Origin: Antechinus flavipes | Taxonomy: Eukaryota | Reading direction: 5' to 3' | Assembly (NCBI RefSeq): GCF_016432865.1 | Contig: NC_067401.1 | Location: forward strand, 191,146,001 to 191,210,000 | Length of the DNA stretch: 64,000 nucleotides | Shown: positions 9,523-56,000 of the stretch, one piece after another | Position numbering within the stretch: position 1 is the first letter of the stretch | How the letters are laid out: each line of letters begins with the position of its first letter | Notes under the pieces: model-generated | What the model was told of the DNA's origin: nothing | The model's database searches: none | Seen by the model: the letters and a program-made list of their open reading frames with translations, nothing else | Translations under genes and position numbers: made by a program

Positions 9523-9596
9523 GCGGCTCCTGATTGTCCAAACGCAATTCTCGTGGCTCCGGCCCTCGAGAATTGGGTCTGGACATCCCGAGCCGC
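9523..9596 (+). ncRNA. MIR219-1: pre-miR-219-1 hairpin
   Basis: Mature 5p TGATTGTCCAAACGCAATTCT (9531-9551) equals miR-219-5p. 3p arm AGAATTGGGTCTGGACATCCCG (9569-9590). Closing stem GCGGCTC/GAGCCGC. Position between HSD17B8 and RING1 matches human. Confidence 0.97.
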
Positions 9597-10617: not shown

Positions 10618-13000
10618 ATGGCGACCCCAGCAAATGCACAGAGCGCCAGCAAAACGTGGGAACTAAGTCTCTATGAGCTACATCGGACTCCACAGGTGAG
10701 GAAGGGGATCCCCATTCACGCGCATCTCTCCTTCGCACCGCATCCTATACTGTTTACTGTTAACTTCCCCTATCTTGCCTGTATCCAGTTTCTCATCTTT
10801 ATAGGCGACCCAAAGACTGCATATTTTATATGCTTCTCCATCCTGATCTTTCTCACTAATTCCGTTTCTGCAGGAGGCCATCATGGATGGCACAGAAATT
10901 GCTGTTTCCCCACGATCCCTACACTCAGAGCTCATGTGCCCAATCTGTCTGGACATGCTCAAGAATACCATGACCACCAAGGAGTGTCTGCATCGCTTCT
11001 GCTCAGACTGCATTGTCACTGCGCTGCGGAGCGGGTATCAGGAGATACTTGCTAGAATTGGAGGGGTGGGGTGTGGGGGTGTGTGAGGATGGTGAGGTTC
11101 CATGCCTGTGGATGATCTTCTAATCCCTTTTTAGTGTGTGAAAGTAACAGAAACCTCCAGTTACCATTTTGCATTGTAAGTGGTTTCTTTCCTCTAACTC
11201 AATGCAGGAACAAAGAGTGCCCTACTTGTAGGAAGAAACTGGTATCAAAGCGGTCTCTTCGGCCAGATCCAAACTTTGATGCGCTAATCTCCAAAATCTA
11301 CCCGAGTCGAGAGGAATATGAGGCCCACCAGGATCGTGTCCTTATTCGGCTTAGCCGCTTGCATAACCAGCAAGCACTGAGCTCTAGCATTGAGGAGGGG
11401 CTCCGAATGCAGGCAATGCACAGGTATAAAAGTGGTGATACTGAAGTGCTAGACACTAAATTCTAGGAGGTTTCTGGGCATGTAGTAGGCAAAAATTGAT
11501 GATTTTCACTTTCTTGTTTTTTGGCCTCCTAACATCTGACCTCTGACTGCCTAGCCTTCCTACATACTGATTTCTAATTGTTGTTCTTTGCCTCTACAGG
11601 GCCCAACGTGTAAGAAGGCCAATGCCAGAGTCAGACCAGACAACAACAATGAGTGGTGGGGAGGGAGACCCTGGTGAGGGAGAGGGGGATGGGGATGGGG
11701 AAGATGTTAGTTCAGATTCTGCCCCAGATTCTACTCCTGGACCTGCCCCCAAGCGACCTCGGCCAGGGATGGCGGGAAGTAACAGTGGAGGAACAGGGGG
11801 AGGGGCTACTGGAGGTATAGGTGGGGGAGCAGGTTCTGAGGATTCTGGGGACCGGGGTGCCCCGCTGGGTGGAGGGACCCTGGGTCCACCAAGCCCACCT
11901 GGGGCTCCCAGTCCTCCTGAGCCAGGAGGAGAGATCGAGCTTGTGTTCCGGCCCCATCCTTTGCTGGTTGAAAAAGGAGAATACAGTCAGACTAGGTGAG
12001 GAAATTCCCTCAGCAACTGTCTAAAAATTGGGGAACCAGGGACCAAAAGGGATACCCCAAAGTCACAGGGCTTCCTTGTCCAGTCCTGAGGATAATTCCA
12101 TCTATCACTTTGACTCCCCCAAATTCAGAAACATACCTAATGCAAAATCATGATTTCTTCCAAACTTTAAACAATTTCCTGAAAACCCCCAAGATGCCCT
12201 TTCAATATAACATATTTCCTGTTTCACATATATGCTGTATCAAAGCATATTTGCTTTTTTTCACTGATCATTTGCCCCAATTCCTCAGATATGTGAAGAC
12301 AACAGGGAATGCCACAGTTGACCACCTCTCCAAGTACTTGGCTCTAAGGATTGCACTTGAACGGAGGCAGCAACAAGAGGCAGGGGAGCCTGGGGCGCCA
12401 GGTGGAGGAGTCCCAGAAGCTGGAGGACCTGAGGGAGGTGGGGGGGAGGCACCCAGAACTGGAGGAACTGATGGGACAGAGGAGCCAGCCTTGCCCAGCC
12501 TGGAGGGTGTCAGTGAGAAGCAGTATACCATCTACATTGCACCTGGGGGAGGAGCTTTCACGGTGAGAAAATGGAAGGGAATAATTGTGGGGGGGTATTG
12601 GGAACAAGAGAAAAATTTAAGATAAAACATGCTCCATTCATCTTGTCACTAATCAGTTTTCTGTATGCTGTTTCTCTCCCACTTTTCTTTTTGTCCTTCC
12701 ATTTATCTCCCATTACCTTCCTCTTTTATTCTTTTTTTTCCCTTCCCATCCCTCTCCCTCTTTTTTCATACTTGGAGATTTTTCTTTATATCACTCATGT
12801 CTTTTTTTTCCCCCTGATCCCACTTTTTTTTTCTCCTTCCTTTTAACACTGTTCTCCCCTTCCCTCTACCTTCTTTCTGATTTATTTCATATCCCTAGAC
12901 TTTGAATGGCTCACTGACCCTGGAGTTGGTGAATGAGAAGTTCTGGAAGGTGTCCAGACCCCTGGAGCTGTGCTATGCCCCAACTAAGGACCCCAAGTGA
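10618..13000 (+). CDS. RING1: E3 ubiquitin ligase RING1 (RING1A, PRC1), 6 coding exons, 408 aa
   Basis: Exons 10618-10695, 10874-11034, 11208-11423, 11600-11995, 12289-12562, 12899-13000 (1227 nt). C3HC4 RING (CPICLDML...CLHRFCSDC...CPTC), Gly-rich linker and RAWUL C-terminus ending [18 protein letters not shown] at 13467-13472. Confidence 0.98.
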
Positions 13001-13479
13001 CCCAAGGGATGGGGCTCATGGGGCTTCTGTGTGTATGTCCTAGCTCTGCCTCCAGGTCTGTGTTCCCCCTACCCCACTCCTTACCCTGCCTGGCCGGCGG
13101 AGAGAGGACACCGAAGAGGACAAATGGCTTTTATATAAAGTGTCTATATCAGATTCTTCTATATTGTACAGATTGGGGTGTGCACCCCCAATTCCTTCCT
13201 TTTCTATTCACCAGTCACCTCCCTTCTGTAATGGGATGTTATGGAGGGAAGAAAACCTCCCCTCCCGCCAACAACGCATTTGCTTTTTTTCTTTCAAATC
13301 TGTGTCTGTCTGTGTGTTGGGGGAGGGGGGAATGGACCAAAGAAGGAAGGGGAAATAGTATCGACCATGAAAAATTTTGAATGTTGCCTCCGTGGGAAAA
13401 AATCAGATCGCTAATACAGTTTGAAAGCCGGAAGGAGCAAAGTGGAAGAGATAAAAATATCTCCCCAATAAACGAGAGT

Positions 13480-13985
13480 GGCTAGCAGATATCGTCGCTG
13501 CCCTGCTTGTTCTGCGTCCCTTGTCCTTGGTCACAGTTACAGCTTCATGGCGCTCCGCCTCCCTGGACGTCTAAGAGGGGCAGTAGCCAGGACTACGGTT
13601 CCCATGAGGCCTCAGAGTAGGGCATCGCTGACCTTAGAACGCTACTGTCCCGAAGGCCTATGGGGATTGTGGTTTTTACTTCCCCAGGTAGTGGGGGAGG
13701 GGGTCGTGGAAATCATTGGTTCGCCTTTCTTGCTGCAAGATGGGTGGGATGTGAGCTTACCCGGGACAGAGTTGCAGGGGCTGATAAGCGTCAGGGCTCA
13801 ACGGGAAATCTAGTAGAAAGCTGGATGGCTTTGGGAGGGATCGAGCCCCTCCCGCCCCCGCCCCTTCTTCGGGTACTCTGCCTCTCACTTCCTGTTTCCG
13901 CTACTCCTTTCATTTCTCCCCGTCCCCAAATTCCCGTGTCTGAGCTCAGTCCGCTGTCTGGCTGGCAGTCGAGTTGGTGGTGCAG
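13480..13985 (+). promoter_or_regulatory. CpG-rich promoter and probable first exon of the KRAB-ZNF gene
   Basis: ZNF143/THAP11-type motif GACTACGGTTCCCATGAGGC (13591-13610), a second degenerate copy ~13642, ETS motifs CACTTCCTGTTTCCG (~13886) and a strong donor CAG|GTAAT at 13985/13986. Confidence 0.6.
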
Positions 13986-15438
13986 GTAATTGGTCCGCCC
14001 GGTCCTCTCCCTAATATCTCAGCCGTCAGTCCTCCTCAGCCCCGAGATCCTCAAAACCAGGGACTCCCACACCTTGAGACCTATATTGTGGACCTTCCAT
14101 ACCAGGGACCCTCCCACACCCCCGGGACTTTCAATACTAGGCCATGGACCTTAAATATTAGAGACCCTTTCCGAGACCCAGGATCCTCGATTTCGTGAAT
14201 CCCTCTGCCCAAATCAATAAGGGACTCGCCCATGCCTCTGAAACCTATAGCCTCCGGACCTCAGTGTTAGAAACTTCCCAGTCCCTGAAACCTCCAATAC
14301 CAGAGACCTGCCCCTTCTCCCACACATCTACCGTACTCGACATCTCAGACTCAGAACTCTCAGCCTCCGATTCGATATCAGCCAGCCTCTTACGCAGCTC
14401 GAAGACACCCCCAGAGCCCTCAGGGAGCTTCAGTATCAGGGACTTTTCTATTGCTGCATCTTTAACACGGGAGAGCTCCTTTCCTGTAACCTTCAGACAG
14501 TTTTTAAAGACCCCCAGTGCCAAAACTCTCCCAGTAGAACTCTCAATGTCATAAATCTCTCCCTGAATTCTTGTGTCTTCCTACAGTACCAGAACTAGGG
14601 AATCTCCCCGGAACCAAAGACTTTCTGTAGCCTCTGGGAATGATCCAGTGCACTCTCCCAGTGTTTTCCTAATATCAATAATTTCCATTTGCACCCTTCG
14701 ATATATGTCTTCTCTAGTTTTGAGGGTCATTTAATGACCACCTATACTTTTCCAACCCCCCAACCTCAAACCCAGGCAGCACCTCCCCATTTCCCAGGCT
14801 TCCTAATAAGTCATCCAAATTCCTGTTCTCAAAACCCTGAAGCCAATCTCTCTCTCTCTCTCTGGGCATCCTGTTCCTAATTCCCCCAGTTTGCCTTCTT
14901 TTCCTCTGTTCCCGATCTGAGAAGTGTGGTGTTTCTGGCATGCTGGGGGAAAGGAAGATGGGACTAGTTTGGGAATTGAGATGTTTGTTCAACCTGAACC
15001 TGGTGCCTCCCAGTGGTCTGAGCTTGCTAATTTCATAGTGGCAGAAGGAAGTGCTAGATGATATGGAGAAAGGGGGGGGGGGGGGGGGCGCGGGGGAGAG
15101 AAGGGCTAGATAGATATACATGAGGAAAAAAATGGTGGAATTTCCCCTCTTCTCTGTTTTGGTTCCAGAGACAGTGTTCCTTCCCCTTCTCATTAAACCT
15201 AACTTCCCAGTGGTCCTTTCTTTCCTCCCAGTCCTGTTCCCCTTACTCCATCCTGGCGCAGTCCATAATTCCCCTTTCCCCCTGCCCTTCCCCTTCCTCC
15301 CCATGTCCTTGTCCCTCCCCTTCTCCTCCAGCTCTTATGTCACCTACATCTTCCCATCCTTCTCTCCTCTCTGCTTCTCACTTTTCTCCACCTTCCCTCT
15401 CATTGTCTTCCACTGGTCATCTTAATCCTCCACCCCCT

Positions 15439-17978
15439 ATGCCAGTGACTTTCACAGACGTGGCTGTGTATTTTGGAGATGTCATGTGGGAGAGCTACAG
15501 GGACCTCATCTCCTTAGGTGAGTACCTTCCATTCTAACATTTATTCTATTAGGGGTGTTGAATTAAAGTGAAATGTCAAATTGAGAGGTGATCTCTCTGT
15601 ACTCTCTGCCAGCATTTCAGTCTTTGAGGTCCCTAGCTCTCTCTTCTCGATTCACCCTCAGGCATCCTACTTCACCATCTCTTGAGTCTTCCTGAATCCA
15701 GCAATCAGATTTTTCTCAAGCACTTTTAATTTGCAAGTATCTGTACCAGATGCAAAGAATACAAGAATACACCAAAAAATGTGTTTTATTGGCTTTTGGG
15801 AGAGATGAGTTACAGAAGTCGATAGAACACTAAGTGGTCAAGAAAGACTTTATGAAAAAAAAAAAAACAAAAAACACTTCATGGAGCACTTGAACTGGGC
15901 CTTGAAGAATTGTTAGGATTCAGCACCAGGGAGGGCTTGGAGGAGAAATTTTTCTAGATAGAATAGTGAATCTTGTTCTTTCTTGCCCCAGGATTTCCAT
16001 TCCCTAAACCAGAACTGATCCCTCACCTGGAGGAAGGGAATGAGCCATGGGGTCCGGGATCTCAAGAATCTGAAGAAATGGGAGTCCCAAAAGAATCCTA
16101 TCCAGGTGAGTAACCAGCACGGAAAATATCCTTTTGCCTTCCCTCTACCTCCTCATGTTCCAAAAAGGGAATTATCAGCTCCAAGATTTGGAGCTTGAAA
16201 GGACTTTGGAGGTCACCTATTTTACACAGGAGGAAATTGAGATTTAGAGGAAAATATCTGCCCAAGGCCAAAGGACTAGAAAGTGGCAGGAGCAAGAGTT
16301 TGAGGTTCTCCAGTGCCAAAACCATCAATCTTCCCACTGTATCACATGGCCCCAGGGATGGAACTCTACTATACCCCCTCACTATCCTAAACTATACTCT
16401 TGTTCTCCAGTAATTGGCAGGAATCATCAAAGTTCTTACCCCTGCCATCAGTAGAGAGGGCTAACCTTAGCCCCTCTCCCCCATCCCTTTCTCCTTGTGC
16501 CTCCAAGGATACAAATTGCTGTATGAGATGTCCTGGTCCACTCCATGTCCCTTCAGGAATGCTATCTATCACAGAGGGGAGGAAAACAATTTCCATAGGG
16601 ATTGAAACCACCTTTCTCCTGTTCACTACAAGATCCTCTTCTTCCTCTATATTCCCTTCATTTCATCACTGTTTGTCTCATAGGCATGAGGACCAAGGAA
16701 GAAGAAGAGGCAGAATCAGTCCCTGACCTTCCTTCTGTCTTGGAGAGTTCCCCACTACCAGCTATACCCTGTGGCTCAACCATCTCCCCACCCCCAGCAT
16801 CCCCACCCCCACCCCCAAAACCCTTTTCCTGCCCTGAATGTGGTTCCTGCTTCTCACGACGCTCCCACCTTTCCCGCCATAGGCTGATTCACTCCGGTGA
16901 GCGCCCCTTCCCCTGCCCTGAATGTGGAAAGTGCTTTGCCCAGGGTGCCCACCTGGCCTTGCATCTGCGTTCCCATACAGGTGACCGACCCTATTCTTGT
17001 GGTCAGTGTGGCCGAAGCTTTCGCCATGGCTCCCATCTGGCCCGGCACCGACGCACACATCTGCCTGACCCCCCCTACCGATGTGGCCAGTGTGGCAAGG
17101 GTTTCTCCCAGAGCTCTGGGCTCCTACAGCACGCCACTGTCCACACCGGCGAGCGTCCCTATATTTGTGCTGTTTGTGGCAGAGGCTTTGGCCGTCACCC
17201 CAGCCTTATCCGCCACCAAAAGTCCCATTCAGGGGAACGTCCTTTCCCCTGTCCTGAGTGTGGCAAGCGCTTCACTCAGAGTGCCAATCTTGCTCGCCAT
17301 CTTCGGACACACACTGGAGAGACACCATACCTGTGTAGGGAGTGTGGGCGCGGCTTTAGCCAACACCCTCGCTTAGTGGCACACCGGAAGACCCACCACT
17401 CAGGACCCCCACCCCCACCCCCTCCTGTCCATTCCTGCGCTGACTGTGGTCTACTGTTCCCTCAGGCTCTGGCCCTGGTCCGTCACCAGGCAGCCCATCA
17501 TGGTGGTGAGAAGCCATTCCGCTGCACCCAGTGTGGGGAGGGTTTTGGTCACCGCTCCAACCTGAGGCGCCACCAGCGTGGCCATGGTGGGGAGCGGCCG
17601 TACCGCTGCAGTCAGTGTGGCAAAGGCTTTGGCCAGAGCTCCGGCCTGGTCCAGCACCAGCGCATTCACACTGGTGAGAAGCCCTTCCGCTGCCCAGACT
17701 GCGGGCGTGGATTCCGCTATAGCTCCAACCTGGCGCAACATTACCGGGGCCACACTGGGGACCGCCCCTTCCGCTGTGAGCATTGTGATCGTGGCTTTAC
17801 CCGTAGCTCTCACCTGCTACGACACCGTGCCACACATGGTGGGGAGGATGGAGATGAGGACTGTAGGCCCGGAGGGATCCCTGTGCTGACAATTAAGGCA
17901 ACTTCCCTAAGCCAGGAATCTCCCAAGGACTCTGGAGGCACTGTCCAAGTGAGTGAAACCCTATCTCAGCCAGAGTGA
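15439..17978 (+). CDS. KRAB-A/KRAB-B C2H2 zinc-finger protein with 12 fingers (~495 aa)
   Basis: KRAB-A exon 15439-15517 (MPVTFTDVAVYFGDVMWESYRDLISL G|GTGAGT). KRAB-B exon 15992-16105 (GFPFPKPELIPHLEEGNEPW...). Final exon 16684-17978 has 12 intact CxxC...HxxxH fingers with TGERP-type linkers. Phases 1/1 are consistent and there are no internal stops. The start codon is uncertain. Confidence 0.9.
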
Positions 17979-20329
17979 TTTATTTGTTCCCTGCGGTTGG
18001 AGCAACTGAGTCTTACTCCAGCCCAGTCTTTGGCTGTAGTGACTCCCAAAGCAGCCACTTTTTTGTAACCCAGATGATTACTCTTCCCTTGTCTTTCCTC
18101 AGAGAACAGGTAACCAACTCCCCATGCCCATGCCAGGAGTGAGAGCTCCTAAGTGCCCTCCTTGTCTCTCTGAGACTATGCCTATGAGACCTCCTCTAGG
18201 GGCTGATTCCCTTTGCCTAAGGAAAAGTGTTTCCCAAAAGAGAGTACGCTCCCTGTTCTTTTCTCTCTTCATCTTTATCTAAAGAGTTTGTTGAGGCTGT
18301 CTCAGGAATAGCTGGCAATTACAGGTCTCTGCAGGAAACTTCAAGGAAGATAAACTGAATCCCTGTGATAACCCCTGCCTGGGATACAAAAAAATCACAC
18401 TAATACTTTCAGAAGTTGCACTTGGTTCTTAACCACCATCTCTTTATTTCTGACTGATCCCATGATGCTTTGGAGGCTACCTGGGATCCTTTCTTTTATG
18501 GGTACCAAAGTACTTTCCACAGCTTCCTTTGACAATGTGATCTACACTGACTGTAGCTCTCTAAAGGTGCCAGATCTTAAAACTCCTTATCACATTGAGT
18601 CAAGAACACAGGCAAATCGAGCTATCCCTTTCCAGTTGCTTACATTCCCTTGCATTACTAACGTTCTATAGAAAACCTGGGATTTCCATATTGTAGATGC
18701 TGTCTCCAGTGATGTAGCTCAAAAATTGCCATTGCCCATGTCTATGACAATTCTTATTACCATCCCCCCCCCCAAAAAAAAGCATCACCCAGTTGCCAAC
18801 CTTTAGCTGATGAACTCTTCCAAACTTAATTAGATTGCCTCTAGTGCAACAGACTCAGTGGATTGTTAGACTATACTTTCAAACATCTTTTTGATTTGGT
18901 AAAACCTGTCAAAATTTAAATGGATTGCTCTTGTAGTAAAATCTTAAAAGAACTTAGCCTCACCTCCATACCAAAATAAGGCATCAGAATAAGACTGTAT
19001 TAGAATGTTCCCTTAGATTAAAGCCTACAAATGTTGGGAGATATAATTAGGAAAATCAGAAGCAAGATAAAAGTACAATAGCAGGGTCTGGTTGAAAAAA
19101 CTAAAAGGGGGGGGTGGAGTAAGGGAAGTTGGAGAGAGATTAGAAGATAGAAATAAGGGAATGAGACAGGGTATCACTTGTTAAAAAGTAATAATTTCAC
19201 CATATAGTATTGTATTTTATAGTCAAAAATTTTCATATTTTATTTGATCCTCATATAGGCCTGTGAGGTAGATAGTCTCATTTTCATTTGTTAAGATGGG
19301 GTCTGGGATAGGAAAGGGCAATCTCACATACCCAGCCAAAGGAAAAACCAGGATTGGAACTGGATCTTCTGATTTGAACATCGATGGATGTTTCACTATG
19401 TCCATACCACTTCTAGTACACTAGCTGGCTTGGTCCTGTCACCAGAAAGCTTATAGCGTATTTAAGAAAACAGGACATATCTAGGGGGAAAAAAAAAAGA
19501 AGGCAATATATAAGGACAAAGCACTATGCAGTGAGGCCCCCTTATTTACATTCCTCAGAACCTACATTTCCTATCCATACAGGGTCTCTTACCCCTGTAT
19601 GAAAAGCAGTCCATGGTTTCCATAAAAGTTTCCAGTGAGGGATATGCAGTTCTCATACAGACATGTCACAGTGGAGAAAATGGGATCTAGTGCCAAAGTT
19701 GACACCAAAGGAGGAAACTATTTCCATCTGTCCTTGGAGAAGGTACTAGGATGAGAAAAGTCCATACTTGCAATATCTTTTGTGCTTATTGTTAATAATA
19801 AGGTATAAATAGTTATTTTAGTTAATTTATTATCTTTCCTCAATGTAACTTTTGGGTTGTTAACAGTAAATAATAAATATTTGAGTTGGAATCTCTCCTA
19901 GAATGTGTCAAAGGGATTTACCTTTCTTTGTATCTCCAATATTGGGGCAAGACCTTGGCACATAGTAAGCACTTAGTAAATGCTTATTGGTTGACTATTT
20001 TGATAAGTGCAAGAAAGAACTATGGGATGGCTGATATTTAAGCTTAGAGATAGTTGCATCCAAAATTCTTTCTTTGCAAATAAGAAAATGAAGGTCTAGA
20101 GAGGGGAAAGAAGTTATATTGCAATACAATATCAAGCTATAATATGAACCATATATAGTAATCAAGCGATCTGAATCAAAGAAATGCTTCCTAAAGGAGG
20201 TAAGGGTGGAGAGGAAGGACACAGGTAAGTAGAAAAGAGAGAGTCATACATTCCTTCTAAAGCAACGTCTGCATCAGGAAATTCTATGTCCTGCCTCCAT
20301 GTCTTTTATAAGTTGTCCCCTAGGGGACA

Positions 20330-21000
20330 TAGAATGTTGAATATAGGAAACAGCAAATAGGTCAGTTTTCCTGGAACTTAGATTTCTAGAAGTGTATTTA
20401 ATTATTCTGGAGAGATAGTTAAGAGCCTAACTGTGAAGAATTTTAAATATCAAACAAAGGAGCAACTTTATCCTAAGCAATTGAAGCTTCTTAAGCAGGG
20501 GAATGAGTGGTCAGAGCAGTGCTTTAGTGATAATCACTTTGGTAGCAGGTGAAAGATGGAGTGAGAGAAGAGAGACCAATTGGAAAGCAATTACAAAAGT
20601 TAAGGCAAGAGATATTGAGGTCTTAAATTAGAGAGGTGACCATATGAATGAAAGGAGAACTGGTAAGAGAGATTAAAGAGGTAGAATTGACAAGATCACA
20701 TTACTGGATATGGGAGTTGAGGGAAAGGGAAGAATCAGTAGCAAAACCTGTTGTGAACATAGGAGTCTAAGTAGTGGAAAAAGTTGAGAGGAAGAATGAG
20801 TTTATAGGAAAAGAAATTCTTTTTGAGTTTGAGATGACTATGGAGGAAGCTGGAGGTCTGAATACAGGAGATATGAGAGTTGAATATGTAGATTTGAAAA
20901 TGAACTGCATAGAGGCAACAATTAAATTCATGAAAGCAGATGAGATCATCAAAGATAGTGTAGGGACAGATAAGAGAGCCCTGCTCATCAGGGAATAATA
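20330..21000 (-). mobile_element. Ancient LINE-2 fragment
   Basis: Purine-rich, L2-like text (e.g. GAGTTTGAGATG...ATGTAGATTTG...GATGAGATC). Recognised by eye only; boundaries approximate. Confidence 0.55.
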
Positions 21001-21284
21001 AACCAGAGGGGGGGCAAAGTTTGGTTTTGGCAGTATGGAAAATGAAGGAGAAGAAATAAAAAGTAAATTATAGGTTATAGATCTGTGAGTCAATAAAATA
21101 ATAGTGATGCTATTTACATTATATTCACTAAAATTTCTCCAGATATCTTGGGATTTATAGGCCTTAATCACTGCATAGACTTTGTCTGAGGCAAACTGAG
21201 ACCTGTTAAAAACCTTAAAATAAAAAGGACAAGATCTTCCACTGCTTTCAGGACCATTTCTAATAGTTCTGATCTATATTTTGC

Positions 21285-21830
21285 TACCGGACCTAGATGG
21301 CTCCAGAAGAGAAGGTGAGACTGGTGACCCTCCCTCATTTAAATACAATTTATTTACATGTTATGGCATCACCTTCCTGATGTCATAAATTTTTTCAAGA
21401 ATGCAAGACAAACAACAACCTCTGTGAGTAATAGTAGCAGCTGTCCCACTGGGGACCCAATTGTTAACTGGCCAGTTGGACAACACAGCTCTTTTTTTTC
21501 TCTTTTCTCTCCTTTCTTTTTCTTTCCCTTTCTTTCCCTCTATTCACTTGGGATATCATACCCTTACCTATGAGTGCTCTGCCCAAATGAATGTAAATTT
21601 TGATAGGTAAAACCTTGCAAGATAGTTTGGGATTTATGGGCTAGAATGATGCCTTAAATCCAAATCACTCTGGCTTCTGATCTACATCCTGCCACTGGAC
21701 CCAGTGAAGAGAGTGAGGCTGGTGACTTTGCCCAGCCTATCCTGATTTAAATCCAATTCACTTGCATCTCATAGCATCGCCACCCTGATGATATGGATCT
21801 CTTCCTGAAGAAAGGATCAATAGCAAGGAT
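21285..21830 (+). mobile_element. Two RTE-derived SINE/3' fragments (about 21285-21420 and 21640-21830); another tail near 23800-23860
   Basis: RTE 3' motif GGACCYAG...GAGRCTGGTGAC...TTAAATCCAATTCAC...GGCATCACC..CCTGATG...GAAGGA, followed by a CAACAAC tail. Confidence 0.65.
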
Positions 21831-22439
21831 CCATTTGATAGTTATGGATAATTAGAAAAGGATAAAAATTTAAATGTTCAGATGACAGAGAATGTAATTT
21901 GAAGGAATGGGAAATAAATGTAGCAGGAGAAAAACAGGGAACCAAGAAAAGCAAAATGAGAATTAATAGTGTTAGCCAGAAAACTAGGAAAACCAGAAAG
22001 TAAGATCAATTAGGGAAGAATTAGGAAAGGCATGTTCAATAATATCTGAAAAGAAGATGAAAACTTAAAAATCATTGTATTTGGCCAAGAAAAAGTAACT
22101 GATGAACTTAAAATAATAGTTAGCATTTATATAGTGCTTTAAAGTTTGCAAAGCACTTTACAAAGAATATCTTATATGATCCTCTGAACTTTAGATATGG
22201 CTGCTATCATTGTCCTCATTTTACGCATAAGGAAACTGAAGCAAGCAGAGGTTAAGTGATTTGCCTAGGATCACATAATAAAAATCTAGATTTGAATTCA
22301 AGTCCATTCACTGTGCCACTGAGCTGCCTCCAAATCCAGTGAACAAATCCATCTTTGAAACAACTTGAGTTATGTCCCCATAAACTTCTTGGATTTGAAG
22401 GGCATCAGATTAGGTTAGGAAATGTAGGGACATGTGAAG

Positions 22440-37070: not shown

Positions 37071-38759
37071 CAGCTGGAGCACTTTAAATCCTGCCATCTC
37101 CTCCCTGACGTCTCTCAATCAGAAGAGATTGTCCATAATTGTGAGGAAGTTATAGACTCTGTCCACTCCAGCAGATCTGACTTAAAGGACACCCCCCTTG
37201 AGAACGCCGATGGGGAGTGGGTCACAGATGGGTCGAGCTTTCTCGAGAATGGGGAGAGAAAGGCCGGCTATGCTGTGGTGTCCCTTCACAGCACCCTGAA
37301 GGCCAAGCCATTGCCTCCTGGTCCTCTGCACCGAAATCGGAGCTCATTGTATTAACCAGAGTGTTAGAACTTGGGAAGGGGATGAGAGGCAACATCTACA
37401 CTGAATCCAAATATGCTTTCTATATTTTACATGCTCATGGAGCAATTTGGAAAGAAAGGGGCTTGTTGACAGCAAAAAACTCTCCCATTAAACATGCGGG
37501 AGAAATTATGCACCTATTGCACGCTGTCCGTGAACCCAGAAAGGTCTCGGTCATATTCTGTAACGGGCACCAAAGGGGGGATTCATTTCAGGCCAACGGA
37601 AACAGGCTGGCAGACCTTGCTGCTAAGTCTGCTGCCCTTTCACCACTGACTGTGTCTCCTTTAATTCCCTAACTGCCCGAGTCTTTTGTTCCTTCCTAAA
37701 CAGCTCTAGCAAAGGAACGGGGGTTCACCCTTTCTCCCTCCGGTTGGTTTCAAACGCCCTCAGACACTTCTTAATTCCGGAGGCAAGTCAGTGGAAACTT
37801 GATCTCTGGTCTCCACCAGGCCACGCACCTGGGGAGAAATGCTCTCCATTCCCTGGGGAAACGCATTCTCATGGACCACAAGCTGGGGGAAACATTCAAA
37901 CAGGTGTGCCAGGCCTGCCCAGTCTGTGCCCAGGTAAATCCCGAGGGAGCTGTTAAGCCCCCACCTCTCCCGAAGCCAGTCCCGAGGGGAGGCACGTGCC
38001 CTGGCGAGGATTGGCAGCTAGACTTCCCCCACATCCCCCCTTGTAGAGATTTTAAGTTGCTTTTGGTATTTGTTGCTACTAACCTCCCAACTGATAGAAT
38101 GCTTTGCGACTACATTCATCCATGGGGCCGAGCAACCAGGAGACTGCTTCAGAATCTAACCTCAGGTACCGTCTGTGCACCTAAGGGATATGCCTCCCTC
38201 TGCAAAGTAAGTTCCCCATTCCCCTCCAGCACCTCTCAGAGGCCTATTAAGAGAAATGCCTCTGATTGGAACCCACTCCCACCTGTGACTCTCTCCACCC
38301 AGTGCTTGACGCCCTTCAAACACTATGGGTCTTGCATCTTGGGCCACTTGATTACCCCTTTCACTGTATACAATGCCAGTGCCCCAGATGCAGCCCCAAC
38401 TCCTCTGAGGAGACATAAGCGGGGATTCTGGGAGAACACTCTGTGGTACTTGAAGAAAGGGGCTGGGATGCTATTTCCTTGGGTTGGATATTTAGAACAT
38501 GAAAGTGTTCTCTCCAACCTGACAGCCACAGTCCACCAATTTGCCAATGAGCCAATAAACAGCTCATTCATTGAGGGAGATTCAGGAATCTCTTGACTCG
38601 TTGGCTAATATGGTTTTGGATAATCGCATGGTTTAGATTATCTTCTAGCCTCCAGCGGAGGTGTCTGTGCTCTGGTAAACACCTCTTGCTGCATGTACAT
38701 TAACAACTCAAGGAAAGTTGAGCTGCGCACAGAGAGAATCTTACAGAAGGCTGCCTGGA

Positions 38760-42994: not shown

Positions 42995-45502
42995 CAGGGA
43001 TCCTCAAACTATGGCCTGTGGGCCAGATACGGCCCACTGAGGACATTTATGCGGCCCGCCGGGTTATGGCAAAATTAGACCAGAAGTGACGTTTGATCTA
43101 AACTTGCATTAGCAACACACACTCCTGGCACTGGGCTGCGGTGGTGGAGATAGAGTGTGAGGCAGTATCGAGGTGAGGTGAGTTCCCAGGCCGGGGTGTG
43201 TGGGGGGGGGAAGGGGGAGAGATGCAGAAGACAGAGAACTGAGGGCCCGTAGGGGATGTACAGTGCATGCTGCACATGTCACTGCCGCTGCAGGGGGAAT
43301 TCACTGCAGCAGTGAAGGTTGGAAGCGGGAACTCGAAGAGGGGGAGAGAGAGTGCAGGAAACAGAGGCGTCACAGTGCAGAGGCAGCTTGGAGGAACTTG
43401 GGCACGTAGTCTGTATGTCTCTGTGTGGGCAAAGTTACTGCTGGTATGTTGTTTTTGTAGCGCTGTATACACATATTGGTATTTTATTAATAGTAATTTG
43501 GAATCCCTAGGAAATAATGATGTCAAAAAAAAGAAAAATTGACTCAGAGTGTAGGATATTCAAAGAACAGTGGATTTAGGATTACTTTTTCATGCAGGAC
43601 AAGGAAAGATCTGGGTGTCTGATATGCCAGATACTATATTCTGTGTTCAAAGAATATAATTTGCGTGGCCACTATGAAACTCAACATAAAGATTAATATG
43701 ATTGTTTGGTTGGAGAAATGAGAAAAGATAAATATTAAAACTGAAAAACACATTGACAACTCAGCAAAATACTTTTGTGAAGCAGAAGCAGCTAAATATT
43801 TCATCACTGCGAGCAAGTTTTCAAGTTGCCAAGCTAATAGCACGCACTGGCAGACCATTCGTGGAGGGAGAATTTGTTAAAGAATGCCTTCTTTCTGTTG
43901 CCAAAGAAATATGTCCAGAGAAGGCCGATTTATTTAGTACAGTGAGTCTTTCAAGACCTACAATTACACGGAGGATTGAAGAAATGGGAGACAATCTGCA
44001 TCAGCATTTGCAAAACTCCATAAAAAAAATTTCATATTTTTCCTTGGCACTTGATGAAAGCAATGATGTTTGTGATTCTGCACAACTTCTAATGTTTATT
44101 CGTGGGACGAATGATTATTTAGAAGTCATAGAAGAGCTTGCTGCACTACAAAGCATCAAAGGAACAACTACAGGAGAGGATATCTATGAAAAAGTTTGCC
44201 AAACTATGAATGGTTTGGAGCTGGACTGGGCTAAACTAGCCAGCGTGACAATTGATGGTGCTCCTAGCATGGTGAAGTCTAAGAAAGCAGTAATTGCTCA
44301 TATTAACCAAGAGATGGACAAACATAACCATTCTCATCCAATAGCCACACACTGCTTCATCCACTGACAAGCGCTGTGTAGTAAATCACTGAAGTGGGAC
44401 TCCATTATTGTGTAACTTCATTAGAGCTAATGCACTAAATCACAGACAATTTCAGGAATTTCTGTCTGAGCTAAGTGTTGAGTATGAAGATGTTCTATAT
44501 CACACAGAAGTCCATTGGCTGAGTTGAGGGAGAGGTTTGAAACGTTTCTATGACTTACTTCCACAGATTACAACTTTTCTGCTTTCAAAAAACAAAGAAG
44601 TACCAGAGCTCAATGACGCAGAATGGAAATGGCACCTTGCCTTTCTGACAGATGTAACAGAGCTACTCAACAATTTCCATATGCAACTTCAAGGTAAGGG
44701 GAAGCTCATCTGTGATATGCAATCACATGTCAAAGCATTTGAAGTAAAATTAGGCCTCCTCATCAAACAAGTGAAGGAGGAAAACTTCTGCCATCTCCCC
44801 ACAACTCAAAATCTGTTAGTGGAAAAACCACTGATTGCATTCCCAAACAAAACATGTGTGGATTCACTGGAAAAATTGCAAAAGGAGTTCCAATTTAGAT
44901 TTAAAGAGCTTCATCATGGAGATGACATGCAGCTTTTCTGTAACCCATTTTCTATTGACATTGAAAACGTGGATACAATTTACCAAATGGAACTGGCTGA
45001 ACTGCAGAATTGTGACTCTCTGAAAGATGCATTCAAGTCAAGCAGCCTTCATAATTTCTATGCATCTCTCCCTTCTGAGACATAGCCTCATCTCAGGAAC
45101 CATGCACTCAAAATGGCAACCATCTTTGGCAGCACTTATGTCTGTGAACAGACTTTTTCTAGAATGAAACATTTGAAATCTCCGACCAGATCAAGACTAA
45201 CGGATGCACACTTGCATCACTTGTTACGACCAGCAGTGACAAATATGGAACCAGACATTGACCATCTCATTAGCCAAAAGCAGGCCCATAGTTCCCATTG
45301 AAATACTGGTAAGTTTGTTGATTTAACTTTACTTCATTTTAAATATTGTATTTGTTCCCATTTTGTTTCTTCACTTCAAAATAAGATATATGCAGCATGC
45401 ATAGGAATTTGTTCATAGTTTTTGTTTTTACTATAGTCCGGCCCTCCAACAGTCTGAGGGACAGTGAACTGGCCCCCTATGTAAAAAGTTTGAGGACTCC
45501 TG
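42995..45502 (+). mobile_element. Near full-length hAT (Charlie group) DNA transposon, OposCharlie1/OC1-like, 2508 bp
   Basis: TIRs CAGGGATCCTCAAACT (42995) and AGTTTGAGGACTCCTG (ending 45502). 8-bp flanks GTGTAGAG / GTATGGAG (6/8 match). Contains a decayed transposase. Confidence 0.92.
43517..45301 (+). pseudogene. Decayed hAT transposase (SPIN/OC1/GTF2IRD2-like)
   Basis: MMSKKRKIDSECRIF, zinc-finger CLICQ...KEYNLRGHYETQH, FSLALDESND, DGAPSM and dimerisation motif FGSTYVCEQTFSRM. Multiple stops and frameshifts. Confidence 0.92.
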
Positions 45503-53019: not shown

Positions 53020-56000
53020 TGTGGTGAGCTTTTTCTTCTTAAAACGCAGCCAGGTGATAAAAGTTCAGATCTTTTATTATTTCCAATATAGCCCGGTTAG
53101 CTTAGAGGCCTATCTCTCTGCTTGGTTCCAAGAGCTCCCTCCGAATGTCACCAAATCCAAAGGTCTGGTCCTTCAGCCTCTGCCTCTGCTTTCTTCTATC
53201 TCCAGCCAGCTCTACTCTTCATGTCATTCCGGCAAAATCTCGACTTGTAGTGTCTTCACTCTCAAGAACCTCTTCGACTGGCCCATTGGCCTATTTATGC
53301 TCCTTCCAGAGAGAGGGATTATGGGTTTTCTCCCATAGTGCTCTCTGGTCCAAAGAGCTTCAAGGGAGGTATGAACTCATTGAACTCCAATGAGTAAAGG
53401 TGTGAACACAAGCCTTGTCTTGATTAGTTCTACTTAGTACCTTGTTTCAGGTTCTGGCCAAAACATCTTCTTGTAAGATTAGATCAACTCTAATTACTTA
53501 GCAGTTAGTAAGGATTCCAACATATCCCCCTTTCTTTTGTTTTAAAACATAGGGGGTTTCTGAGGGGGTACACATAAATCCATCAATATGGGCCAGAACT
53601 TTGTAACAGATATACATGGTATACATAAATCCATCAATATGGGAGGCATTATACATAATTTACATAAGTACATAGCAATATAACACAGGCTAGTCCATTA
53701 GTTCATGTGCCAGGAATCTAATAATTCCTGTAAGCTCTGAAGTACTGCAAAAGGTCTCATCAACAATTTTTCATCTCAGGGAATCCAGTGATTCTTGCTG
53801 GTTTTTCAGGAACTGAAAGCTGAAGATTTTAAAGTTCTTTTGACAGTCTCATTGTTAGCCTTTTCCACCTGTGAAAATATAAGCAGATCCTCTTCCCCAA
53901 GCAATTAACCTATTTAATTCTCTTCTATTTACCAAGTTTGGGATTTCTCCTCATCATCTGGTAATTACATTGGAGTTGTTTGCATTGGATATTGTCTTGT
54001 TGTCTTAAAAAGCCTGTATTCTTCCCAACTGTAATCTTGATTGCTTTTCTGTTGGTTGATGACATCAGAGTCCTGAATTTCTAAAGTCTCTCTGGGTGTA
54101 ACCTCAGCTGCTATCATGCCCCACCTGTCCTTTGATTGATACTTTGGAGCTGGGCCTTGCCTCTCCTTCCTCTGGGTCAATATACATTTAGAGGCCCAGT
54201 GAAAGCCTCGGTTACATTTTGGACATGGGGTTTTGGGTTTTCTCTCACCCTGTCTTCTCACTCTATCTCCATATCTACAATGAGCTCTCAAATGTCCAAT
54301 TTTTCCGCACTGAAAACATCGACGAGTTTCTCTAGAATTCCTCTGCCAAGAAGGACCTTGTCTTTCCATGTTCATCATAGTCTGGGCATAATAAGCATTT
54401 GTGCCCACTGTGGCACAGCGTCTTATGATTTCTTCTAAAGGAGCATCTTTGTCTAGCCCCCATATAATTCTTTTGCAAACCTCATTGGCATTTTCCTTAG
54501 CCAAATGTTTAGTCATTATTTCTGTTGCTGCATTGTCTCCAATGGTTCTTATTACAGCTGTTTGTAAACGTCCCACAAAATCTGCAAAAGGTTCATTGGG
54601 ACCTTGCTCTATTTTTGTGAAAGCATTATTTCCATCTTTCTGTCCAGGGAGAGAATTCCAAGCTTTTATTGCAGCCTTAGAAATTTGCTCATACACTGTT
54701 ATGGGATAATAAATCTGTTCTGAACTCTCTGCATACTGACCTTCTCCAGTTAGTTGGTCAAAAGCAACTTGTACAATAGCTCCTGTTTGCCTATTGCATT
54801 GGGCTTGAATCCTACATAATTCATGAAACTCTGAAAGCCACAATAAATTTTGTCCCGGTTCTAGACAAGTTTTCGTTATGGATTTCCAGTCATTCGGGGT
54901 TAGGATTTCATAAGACAAATTATCTAGTAACATCTTCACATAAGATGATGTAGCCCCATAAAGAGTGCAACCCTTTTTCAAATCTTTAATTTTTTCCAAA
55001 TTAAAAGGAGTGTATCTTCTCCTTTTTTGACCTGAGGAGTTGAGCTCTTCAATCACAGGATATGCATGTATAAAATCAGATATATCTTCTCCTTCATTTT
55101 TTGCTTTAATTAATGCTTTTTCTAATCTTGTCAAATTCTGCTTTACAGGAGAAGCTGACTGTGTTTCTGTCTCTCTCCCTCCCCCTTGTTCTACCCATGA
55201 AGGGTTAATTGCGGGGGGAGGGTCATGGGATGTGGAATCACCTAATTCCTCCTTCTGTGAAGTATCATACTCAGAATTGTAATTAACTCCATTCTCATCT
55301 GATTTGTCCTCCTTTTCACCTAGTAAAGTTGGCACTTCCTCCTGTACTTTCCTTTTCATCATTCTATCACTTAAATAACTTCTTATAGCCAATTGTATTA
55401 CATTATATGTATTAATTATTGAGTTAGGCCCATTTTTATCATAGAATTGACAAAGATCCTCTCCAACCAATTTCCATTCATTTAGATCTAATTCCTTATC
55501 AAGAGAGAAACAAGGACATATGTCCTTTACAGTTTGTAAAAGTTCAGTGATTTGCTGTAAACTTATAATTAAACCTTGGCTTTCCATAATTTTGACAATG
55601 CTCTCTAAACATTTTCCACTGAGGGGGGTCTGTTAGCCCCACGTTGGGCGCCAAAATGTGGTGAGCTTTTTCTTCTTAAAACGCAGCCAGGTGATAAAAG
55701 TTCAGATCTTTTATTATTTCCAATATAGCCCGGTTAGCTTAGAGGCCTATCTCTCTGCTTGGTTCCAAGAGCTCCCTCCGAATGTCACCAAATCCAAAGG
55801 TCTGGTCCTTCAGCCTCTGCCTCTGCTTTCTTCTACCTCCAGCCAGCTCTACTCTTCATGTCATTCCGGCAAAATCTCGACTTGTAGCGTCTTCACTCTC
55901 AAGAACCTCTTCGACTGGCCCATTGGCCTATTTATGCTCCTTCCAGAGAGAGGGATTATGGGTTTTCTCCCATAGTGCTCTCTGGTCCAAAGAGCTTCAA

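Follow-up and report, generated by a model that had tools for sequence, protein, structure and literature searches.

Directly 3' of RING1, in a 64,000-nucleotide stretch of DNA from Antechinus flavipes (NC_067401.1, positions 191,146,001 to 191,210,000 of the forward strand; referred to here as the window, from whose first letter positions are counted), lies a gene for a protein with 12 C2H2 zinc fingers that is preceded by exons for a shortened KRAB-A box and a KRAB-B box. We consider it very probable that this is a functional, single-copy C2H2 transcription factor gene of KRAB zinc-finger descent in dasyurids, and that the gene is old and has been lost in placentals. This reading is carried by the strong constraint on the coding sequence since the separation of antechinus and Tasmanian devil (hereafter devil), by spliced devil transcripts, and by decayed remnants of these exons that placental mammals still carry 3' of RING1, with order and strand preserved.

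Constraint on the finger exon and its relatives among proteins

The fingers are encoded in an open frame that extends from 16602 to 17978, within which the true exon starts at 16684 behind an acceptor AG at 16682-16683. The exon specifies an acidic, Pro-rich linker of 46 residues, the fingers, a tail of 46 residues and the stop codon. All 12 fingers are intact C2H2 units (Pfam zf-C2H2, E 1e-65, 12 stretches; zf-H2C2_2, E 4e-79; regular-expression search), and they form a tandem array with H/C links in one large 3' exon, as in members of the KRAB zinc-finger protein (KZFP) family. Seven of them (16824-17411) are set apart from the remaining five (17430-17837) by a run of seven prolines at about 17404-17430; the GC content is 0.61 over 17001-18000.

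Alignment of the finger exon with that of the devil revealed 43 substitutions and no insertion or deletion (indel). Thirty-seven of these substitutions are synonymous and six are non-synonymous (dS 0.126, dN 0.006, omega 0.049), and at helix positions -1, 2, 3 and 6 the two species share 48 of 48 contact residues. In its introns the gene has diverged by about 6.5% between them, with many indels. Purifying selection on the finger exon has been strong ever since antechinus and devil separated.

Relatives of the protein were sought with a word index of 5.8 billion clustered proteins, in which the finger exon and the KRAB part plus linker were queried separately. The only close protein to the finger exon is that of the devil (P0001; 99% identity), while all others show 35-51% identity, the generic level between any two KZFPs; KRAB plus linker of the devil protein matched the devil protein alone. 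Neither a close paralogue nor an annotated eutherian orthologue, which would have contradicted the idea of a gene lost in eutherians, was found above 51% identity among these annotated proteins. A comparison of the contact-residue fingerprints yielded the same picture: the best non-devil protein among 120 matches shares 19 of the 48 residues.

The devil gene is already predicted by NCBI under the name 'zinc finger protein 436 isoform X1' (P0001), so that an earlier reading of this DNA (the sequence-only reading) went too far in calling the gene unrecognised. Orthology to ZNF436 was considered and rejected: identity to 'ZNF436-like' proteins does not exceed 47%, a value also reached by many other zinc-finger proteins, the fingerprint agrees at no more than 19 of 48 places, and the neighbours are RING1, HSD17B8 and SLC39A7. 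The NCBI name is a best-hit label and does not denote orthology. A zinc-finger gene beside RING1 is not mentioned in the marsupial, cat, bat or human literature on the major histocompatibility complex (MHC) that was searched.

Transcripts, gene structure and the surrounding locus

Splicing was read from contigs of four RNA-type libraries aligned on 13300-18400. These contigs stem from the devil, since their variant letters agree with the devil at 39 of the 40 listed places. The joints 15517>15992 and 16105>16684 are present in all four libraries and agree with the frame of the devil protein. KRAB-B occupies an exon of its own, and the KRAB-A, KRAB-B and finger exons are joined in phase 1, again as in the KZFP family. 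A further joint, 13985>15446, with GT..AG ends, was found in one library; in a second library 13985 is connected to an alternative acceptor at about 15169, and run X17 has the joint 13982>15166 and a contig that is unbroken over 15166-15515. RNA evidence for the splicing, for which the sequence-only reading had called, thus exists for the devil. Collectively, the zinc-finger gene is a constrained, expressed gene. A long 3' untranslated region (UTR; Table 1) is suggested by devil contigs of about 5.5 kb that begin at the finger-exon acceptor and end some 3.8 kb past 18400.

Because RNA contigs splice the exon ending at 13985 onto 15446, the gene starts with an exon at about 13.5 kb and not at 15439, where the stretch begins that the sequence-only reading had described as a gene with a complete promoter. 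Just 5' of 15439 the ratio of observed to expected CpG dinucleotides (CpG o/e) is 0.1-0.17 and a promoter is not evident; the sole CpG-richer stretch is found over 13400-14400 (CpG o/e 0.5-0.8). The complete KRAB-A box contained in the same description had to be abandoned as well, whereas its other elements were confirmed: the open frame with 12 GC-rich fingers, the poly-Pro spacer between fingers 7 and 8, KRAB-B, and the distance of 3.2 kb on the same strand between the RING1 AATAAA (13467) and the finger exon (16684).

Two ATG codons, at 15337 and 15439, are in frame and conserved in the devil, and are exonic only when the acceptor at about 15169 is used; in the main splice form the ATG at 15439 lies 7 nt within the intron. 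The NCBI model of the devil protein (639 amino acids) derives its approximately 150 N-terminal residues from a translation of exon 1. In the window, the region corresponding to residues 1-150 of P0001 (13478-13985) is frameshifted, contains a stop and has no in-frame ATG. With the frame thus disrupted in antechinus, the first 150 residues are not conserved coding sequence, and they probably represent translated 5' UTR.

The start of exon 1 follows the RING1 AATAAA at a distance of about 75 nt and lies within approximately 100 nt of the poly-A site, and one devil RNA contig of 2.8 kb (run X16; 13300-16103) leads from the RING1 3' UTR through the poly-A site into exon 1 of the zinc-finger gene. 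In this bridging contig intron 1 is unspliced, while both downstream joints are spliced. Read-through from RING1 into the zinc-finger gene is therefore possible. One could go further and view the locus as a well-preserved relic that is non-functional in dasyurids too, or as a protein-less 3' extension of RING1 read-through, a view to which the closeness of exon 1 to the RING1 AATAAA, the unbroken contig, the unclear start codon in the window species and the crippled KRAB-A would lend themselves. We regard it as very improbable, because a 430-codon frame that has acquired neither indel nor stop after a dS of 0.126, with the omega given above and frozen contact residues, is incompatible with neutral drift, the more so as the introns of this very gene have accumulated many indels; the NCBI pipeline also models the gene as coding.

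The window is dasyurid DNA, about 92% identical to the devil. The part comprising SLC39A7, HSD17B8, RING1 and the zinc-finger gene shows 90-96% identity to two devil assemblies, with identical gene order; the zinc-finger gene is the next gene 3' of RING1 and lies on the + strand like the three others. The segment 12800-13355 aligns with the last exon and the 3' UTR of RING1 of fox and bat. In exon 1, a tandem ETS-like motif with two TTCC cores is identical in antechinus, devil, fox (L005, ~14335) and bat (L007, ~14385). Since eutherians have lost the gene, the motif may have been retained there for another reason, as part of a promoter or an enhancer.

The 45 kb 3' of the zinc-finger gene are AT-rich and contain many open reading frames (ORFs) of mobile elements, for instance at 37217-38596 (+), 43753-45085 (+) and 53965-55587 (-). 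The types represented there are retroviral RNase H/integrase-like, env-like and hAT-transposase-like (in two pieces) frames, together with a 540-amino-acid gag with a zinc knuckle. A protein of Dromiciops gliroides annotated as 'RING1-like, low quality' is encoded by an intronless locus of 1.25 kb (L003, 10001-11254) without MHC neighbours, and this locus looks like a processed RING1 retrocopy at another place in the genome.

Table 1. Features of the RING1 to zinc-finger gene interval in the window, and relics of the zinc-finger gene in placental mammals.
Feature	Position	Strand	Basis and remarks
SLC39A7	ORF from 2581	+	His-rich ZIP transporter ORF
HSD17B8	between SLC39A7 and mir-219/RING1	+	
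mir-219 precursor hairpin	9523-9596	+	Rfam RF00251, 71 bits; just 5' of RING1
RING1	RING-finger exons at 10883 and 11209	+	ORF list and Pfam
RING1 stop codon, 3' UTR and poly-A signal	stop 12998-13000; AATAAA 13467-13472	+	last-exon translation and motif search
Exon 1	13542-13985, 5' end not fixed	+	devil RNA contigs; GT donor at 13986; non-coding or poorly conserved as coding
Exon-1 block conserved between marsupials and eutherians	13854-13985	+	blastn; holds tandem ETS-like motif 13886-13900
Alternative 5' extension of KRAB-A exon	15169-15445	+	RNA contig joint and frame analysis
Short KRAB-A exon	15446-15517	+	splice joints on both sides, Pfam KRAB, alignment to canonical KRAB boxes
KRAB-B exon	15992-16105	+	alignment to KRAB-B of 14 KZFPs; RNA joints
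Finger exon, coding part	16684-17978, stop 17976-17978	+	ORF list, Pfam, finger list
Probable long 3' UTR	17979-22200, end inferred	+	devil RNA contigs; AATAAA candidates 21913, 22277
Exon-1 block relic	fox L005 14300-14410; bat L007 14343-14473; titi L010 14674-14789; camel L012 14010-14086	same strand	blastn
Short KRAB-A relic	fox L005 15186-15257; bat L007 15082-15153; camel L012 ~14855-14930; titi L010 15782-15847	same strand	
KRAB-B relic	titi 16648-16764; camel 15503-15614; chinchilla 15696-15840	same strand	
Finger-exon start relic	camel 15848-16169 (window 16696-17039)	same strand	blastn

Relics 3' of RING1 in placental mammals

RING1 with 10 kb of flanking DNA on either side was compared in echidna, fox, horseshoe bat, rattlesnake, kiwi, titi monkey, chinchilla and camel. 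The RING1 proteins that led to these loci were reached through one RING1 exon and a follow-up search. Fox, bat, camel, titi and chinchilla between them retain relics of the dasyurid exons, with strand and order unchanged (Table 1). The relics of the exon-1 block show 68-72% identity; fox, bat and titi match with E values of 1e-7 to 1e-12, camel more weakly (E 4e-4), and the tandem ETS-like motif within the block is fully conserved. KRAB-A relics were detected by tblastn in titi (E 1.6e-5) and fox (E 0.004) and by alignment in bat and camel; the same central part of the box is absent from all four of them, those of bat and camel contain stops, and the 5' end of the titi relic is truncated by an Alu element. 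KRAB-B was recognized in titi (nhmmer, E 2e-4), where it has suffered indels, a stop and the loss of its donor site, in camel (tblastn, E 0.015), and by alignment in chinchilla. The longest of these matches is to the start of the finger exon and is found in camel: it begins at the same splice acceptor, extends over 348 nt with 63.5% identity (E 1.4e-22), and spans the acidic, Pro-rich linker and fingers 1-3, now interrupted by an 18-nt deletion, frameshifts and stops. Deletions across KRAB-B and the finger part have occurred in fox and bat, and the deletions among the relics are specific to lineages. The placental remnants thus combine orthologous position, strand and order with disabling mutations, and no annotated eutherian protein exceeds 51% identity; this is what is expected of a unitary pseudogene.

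Since placentals keep colinear, disabled relics that include the same short KRAB-A, the gene is old; it adjoined RING1 with its KRAB-A already shortened in the therian ancestor, and it became a unitary pseudogene in eutherians. Placentals lost the gene through decay and piecemeal deletion; dasyurids have retained it under strong constraint. The core proposal of the sequence-only reading, namely that the gene is the living orthologue of one lost in eutherians and belonged to the extended class II region already in ancestral therians, thereby gains the backing of the relics 3' of RING1.

A hidden Markov model (HMM) built from the 12 fingers recovered 12 of 12 in the devil and none 3' of RING1 in the other species examined. 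The finger HMM, relaxed tblastn and nhmmer detected no finger relic in the 10 kb next to RING1 of fox, bat and titi, and a block of 1.2 kb that is conserved in these three species at the expected place did not match the dasyurid finger exon, even when used as a three-species profile. These results bear on human ZNF70P1, which we take to be a zinc-finger pseudogene between RING1 and VPS52, where non-human eutherians have the relics described here, and which the sequence-only reading had viewed as a possible human remnant of the gene; the eutherian sequences compared were all non-human, and the name is absent from the literature searched. As titi is without a finger relic within 10 kb, a finger-bearing human pseudogene near RING1 could be a different, younger insertion.

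Outside therians, none of the exon-1, KRAB-A, KRAB-B and finger-exon blocks was detected in the 10-kb flanks of the echidna RING1, and no trace of the gene was seen over the same distance in kiwi and rattlesnake. In kiwi (Apteryx) the full interval from RING1 to VPS52 is visible and contains only an MHC class II alpha-like gene (L009, 13478-14828). Either the zinc-finger gene arose on the therian stem, or its absence from the 10 kb examined in echidna, bird and snake reflects loss without trace.

An annotated orthologue in the devil alone, and RING1 flanks of 10 kb that are devoid of fingers in fox, bat, titi, chinchilla, echidna, kiwi and rattlesnake, might also be understood if a young, dasyurid-specific duplicate of another KRAB-ZNF had landed beside RING1, the similarity to eutherian DNA then being due to chance or to an unrelated conserved non-coding element. 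This explanation is largely refuted, and we give it next to no credence: among the proteins searched, neither the devil nor any other species has a parent copy above 51% identity, four eutherian blocks are colinear in the right order and on the right strand, one of them the 348-nt camel match at the same splice acceptor, and the unusual internal deletion of KRAB-A is common to the eutherian relics.

Several observations weigh against the reading of an old gene that was lost in placentals and is functional in dasyurids. No annotated orthologue from other marsupial orders was present among the 5.8 billion proteins, which could reflect either loss or missed annotation. On their own, the peptides of the eutherian KRAB-A relics were not recognized by Pfam, and in blastx the camel finger relic was no closer at the protein level to the antechinus gene than to generic zinc-finger genes; the orthology of the relics is founded on the nucleotide alignment, the non-finger linker and colinearity. 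With respect to the protein, the main splice form of the window species has no in-frame ATG 5' of the KRAB-A exon, so that the N-terminus is uncertain and KRAB-A is perhaps only partly translated. The evidence for expression and splicing comes from assembled contigs of devil libraries only and not from antechinus, and such contigs do not reveal the strand, the ends or the level of a transcript; their unspliced parts may stem from carried-over DNA. Finally, the loss of KAP1 binding discussed below is deduced from the sequence only.

The shortened KRAB-A box and known zinc-finger systems

A complete KRAB-A box of the KZFP family comprises about 42 residues in three helical segments and binds KAP1. 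The KRAB-A exon of the zinc-finger gene has a length of 72 nt and would encode 25 residues. Alignment with 14 canonical KRAB boxes placed the missing part, about 17 central residues, after the conserved 'VYF' and before the conserved 'DVM'; 'VTF.DVAVYF' is retained on the N-terminal side and 'DVM.E.Y..L.SLG' on the C-terminal side. Because these central residues are absent, Pfam reports the KRAB domain in two stretches, without the middle of its model, at 26-28 bits (28.3 against a cut-off of 20.4). The shortened box is well preserved in dasyurids: the KRAB-A exon differs from that of the devil by a single synonymous change, and 35 of the 37 KRAB-B residues are identical.

The KRAB-KAP1 crystal structure assigns roles to residues Asp8, Val9, Glu17, Glu35 and Asn36 and to helices alpha2 and alpha3 of the KRAB domain; the stretch that is deleted here corresponds to helix alpha2 with the essential Glu17 and to the start of alpha3 (PMC9753469). 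The position of the essential Asn36 is occupied by Ser in the antechinus KRAB. Because alpha2, Glu17 and the start of alpha3 are deleted and Asn36 is replaced, canonical recruitment of KAP1/TRIM28 has probably been lost. Most KZFPs silence transposons, and the gene product could likewise be a canonical, KAP1-recruiting repressor of a marsupial transposon family: a KRAB-A remnant that retains the Asp-Val pair is combined with KRAB-B and a long finger array in the typical exon layout and phases of KZFP genes. Such a role is nevertheless unlikely in view of the deleted Glu17 region and half of helix alpha3 together with the Ser at the Asn36 position (PMC9753469). Moreover, the gene is single-copy, lies outside any cluster of zinc-finger genes and has evolved slowly over more than 20 million years, and its short KRAB-A predates the marsupial-eutherian split; in all of these respects it is unlike KZFPs that chase transposons.

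Under the reading that we prefer, an old dasyurid gene lost in placentals, the protein would bind a long, specific DNA target by means of its two finger blocks, and its role would resemble that of old 'variant-KRAB' zinc-finger proteins with functions for host genes and not that of a fast-evolving transposon repressor. In its boldest form this line of thought would make the gene a hitherto overlooked part of the framework of the extended MHC class II region of therians, with a KRAB-A that was internally deleted more than 150 million years ago and has still been tightly constrained in marsupials, and would make its product a DNA-binding factor independent of KAP1. On this view its transcription may be coupled to that of RING1, given that exon 1 starts near the RING1 poly-A site, that both genes are bridged by a devil RNA contig, and that the ETS-like element is kept in eutherians; the product could then be a sequence-specific partner or regulator tied to the Polycomb protein RING1. 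We consider this combination speculative and rather improbable.

If the gene is as old as the placental relics suggest, the extended class II region reconstructed for the therian ancestor gains one gene, and placentals contain a clean, datable unitary zinc-finger pseudogene with a living marsupial counterpart. A KRAB-A box that lacks its core would be conservable over very long times, which bears on how old KZFPs lose their dependence on KAP1 and gain host functions. For the devil annotation, the misleading automatic name ZNF436 can be corrected and the upstream 150 residues of the model flagged as not being conserved coding sequence.

Among known zinc-finger proteins, ZNF436 resembles the gene product as a 12-finger C2H2 protein, and reptile 'ZNF436-like' proteins match it at 44-47% identity; it differs in that the antechinus gene has a RING1-adjacent locus, only a generic level of similarity and no fingerprint match. 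MZF1, with 13 fingers and a Gly/Pro-rich spacer, shares the arrangement of two finger blocks around a Pro-rich spacer, and its orthologues are among the better matches (45-46% identity). However, MZF1 has a SCAN domain, its fingers are split differently between the blocks, its fingerprint agrees at 18 of 48 places, and it is located elsewhere. A parallel in kind is offered by the old, conserved subset of KZFPs with variant KRAB domains (Helleboid et al., 2019; PMC6745500). The antechinus gene is unlike these in having a clean deletion of about 17 residues in KRAB-A in place of scattered substitutions or an added SCAN or DUF3669 domain, in surviving, as far as seen, in marsupials only, and in that its failure to bind KAP1 is predicted from its sequence. 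It shares with them an N-terminus of KRAB origin ahead of a long array of C2H2 fingers, an old, single-copy and slowly evolving gene, and a KRAB domain that departs from the KAP1-binding consensus (PMC6745500).

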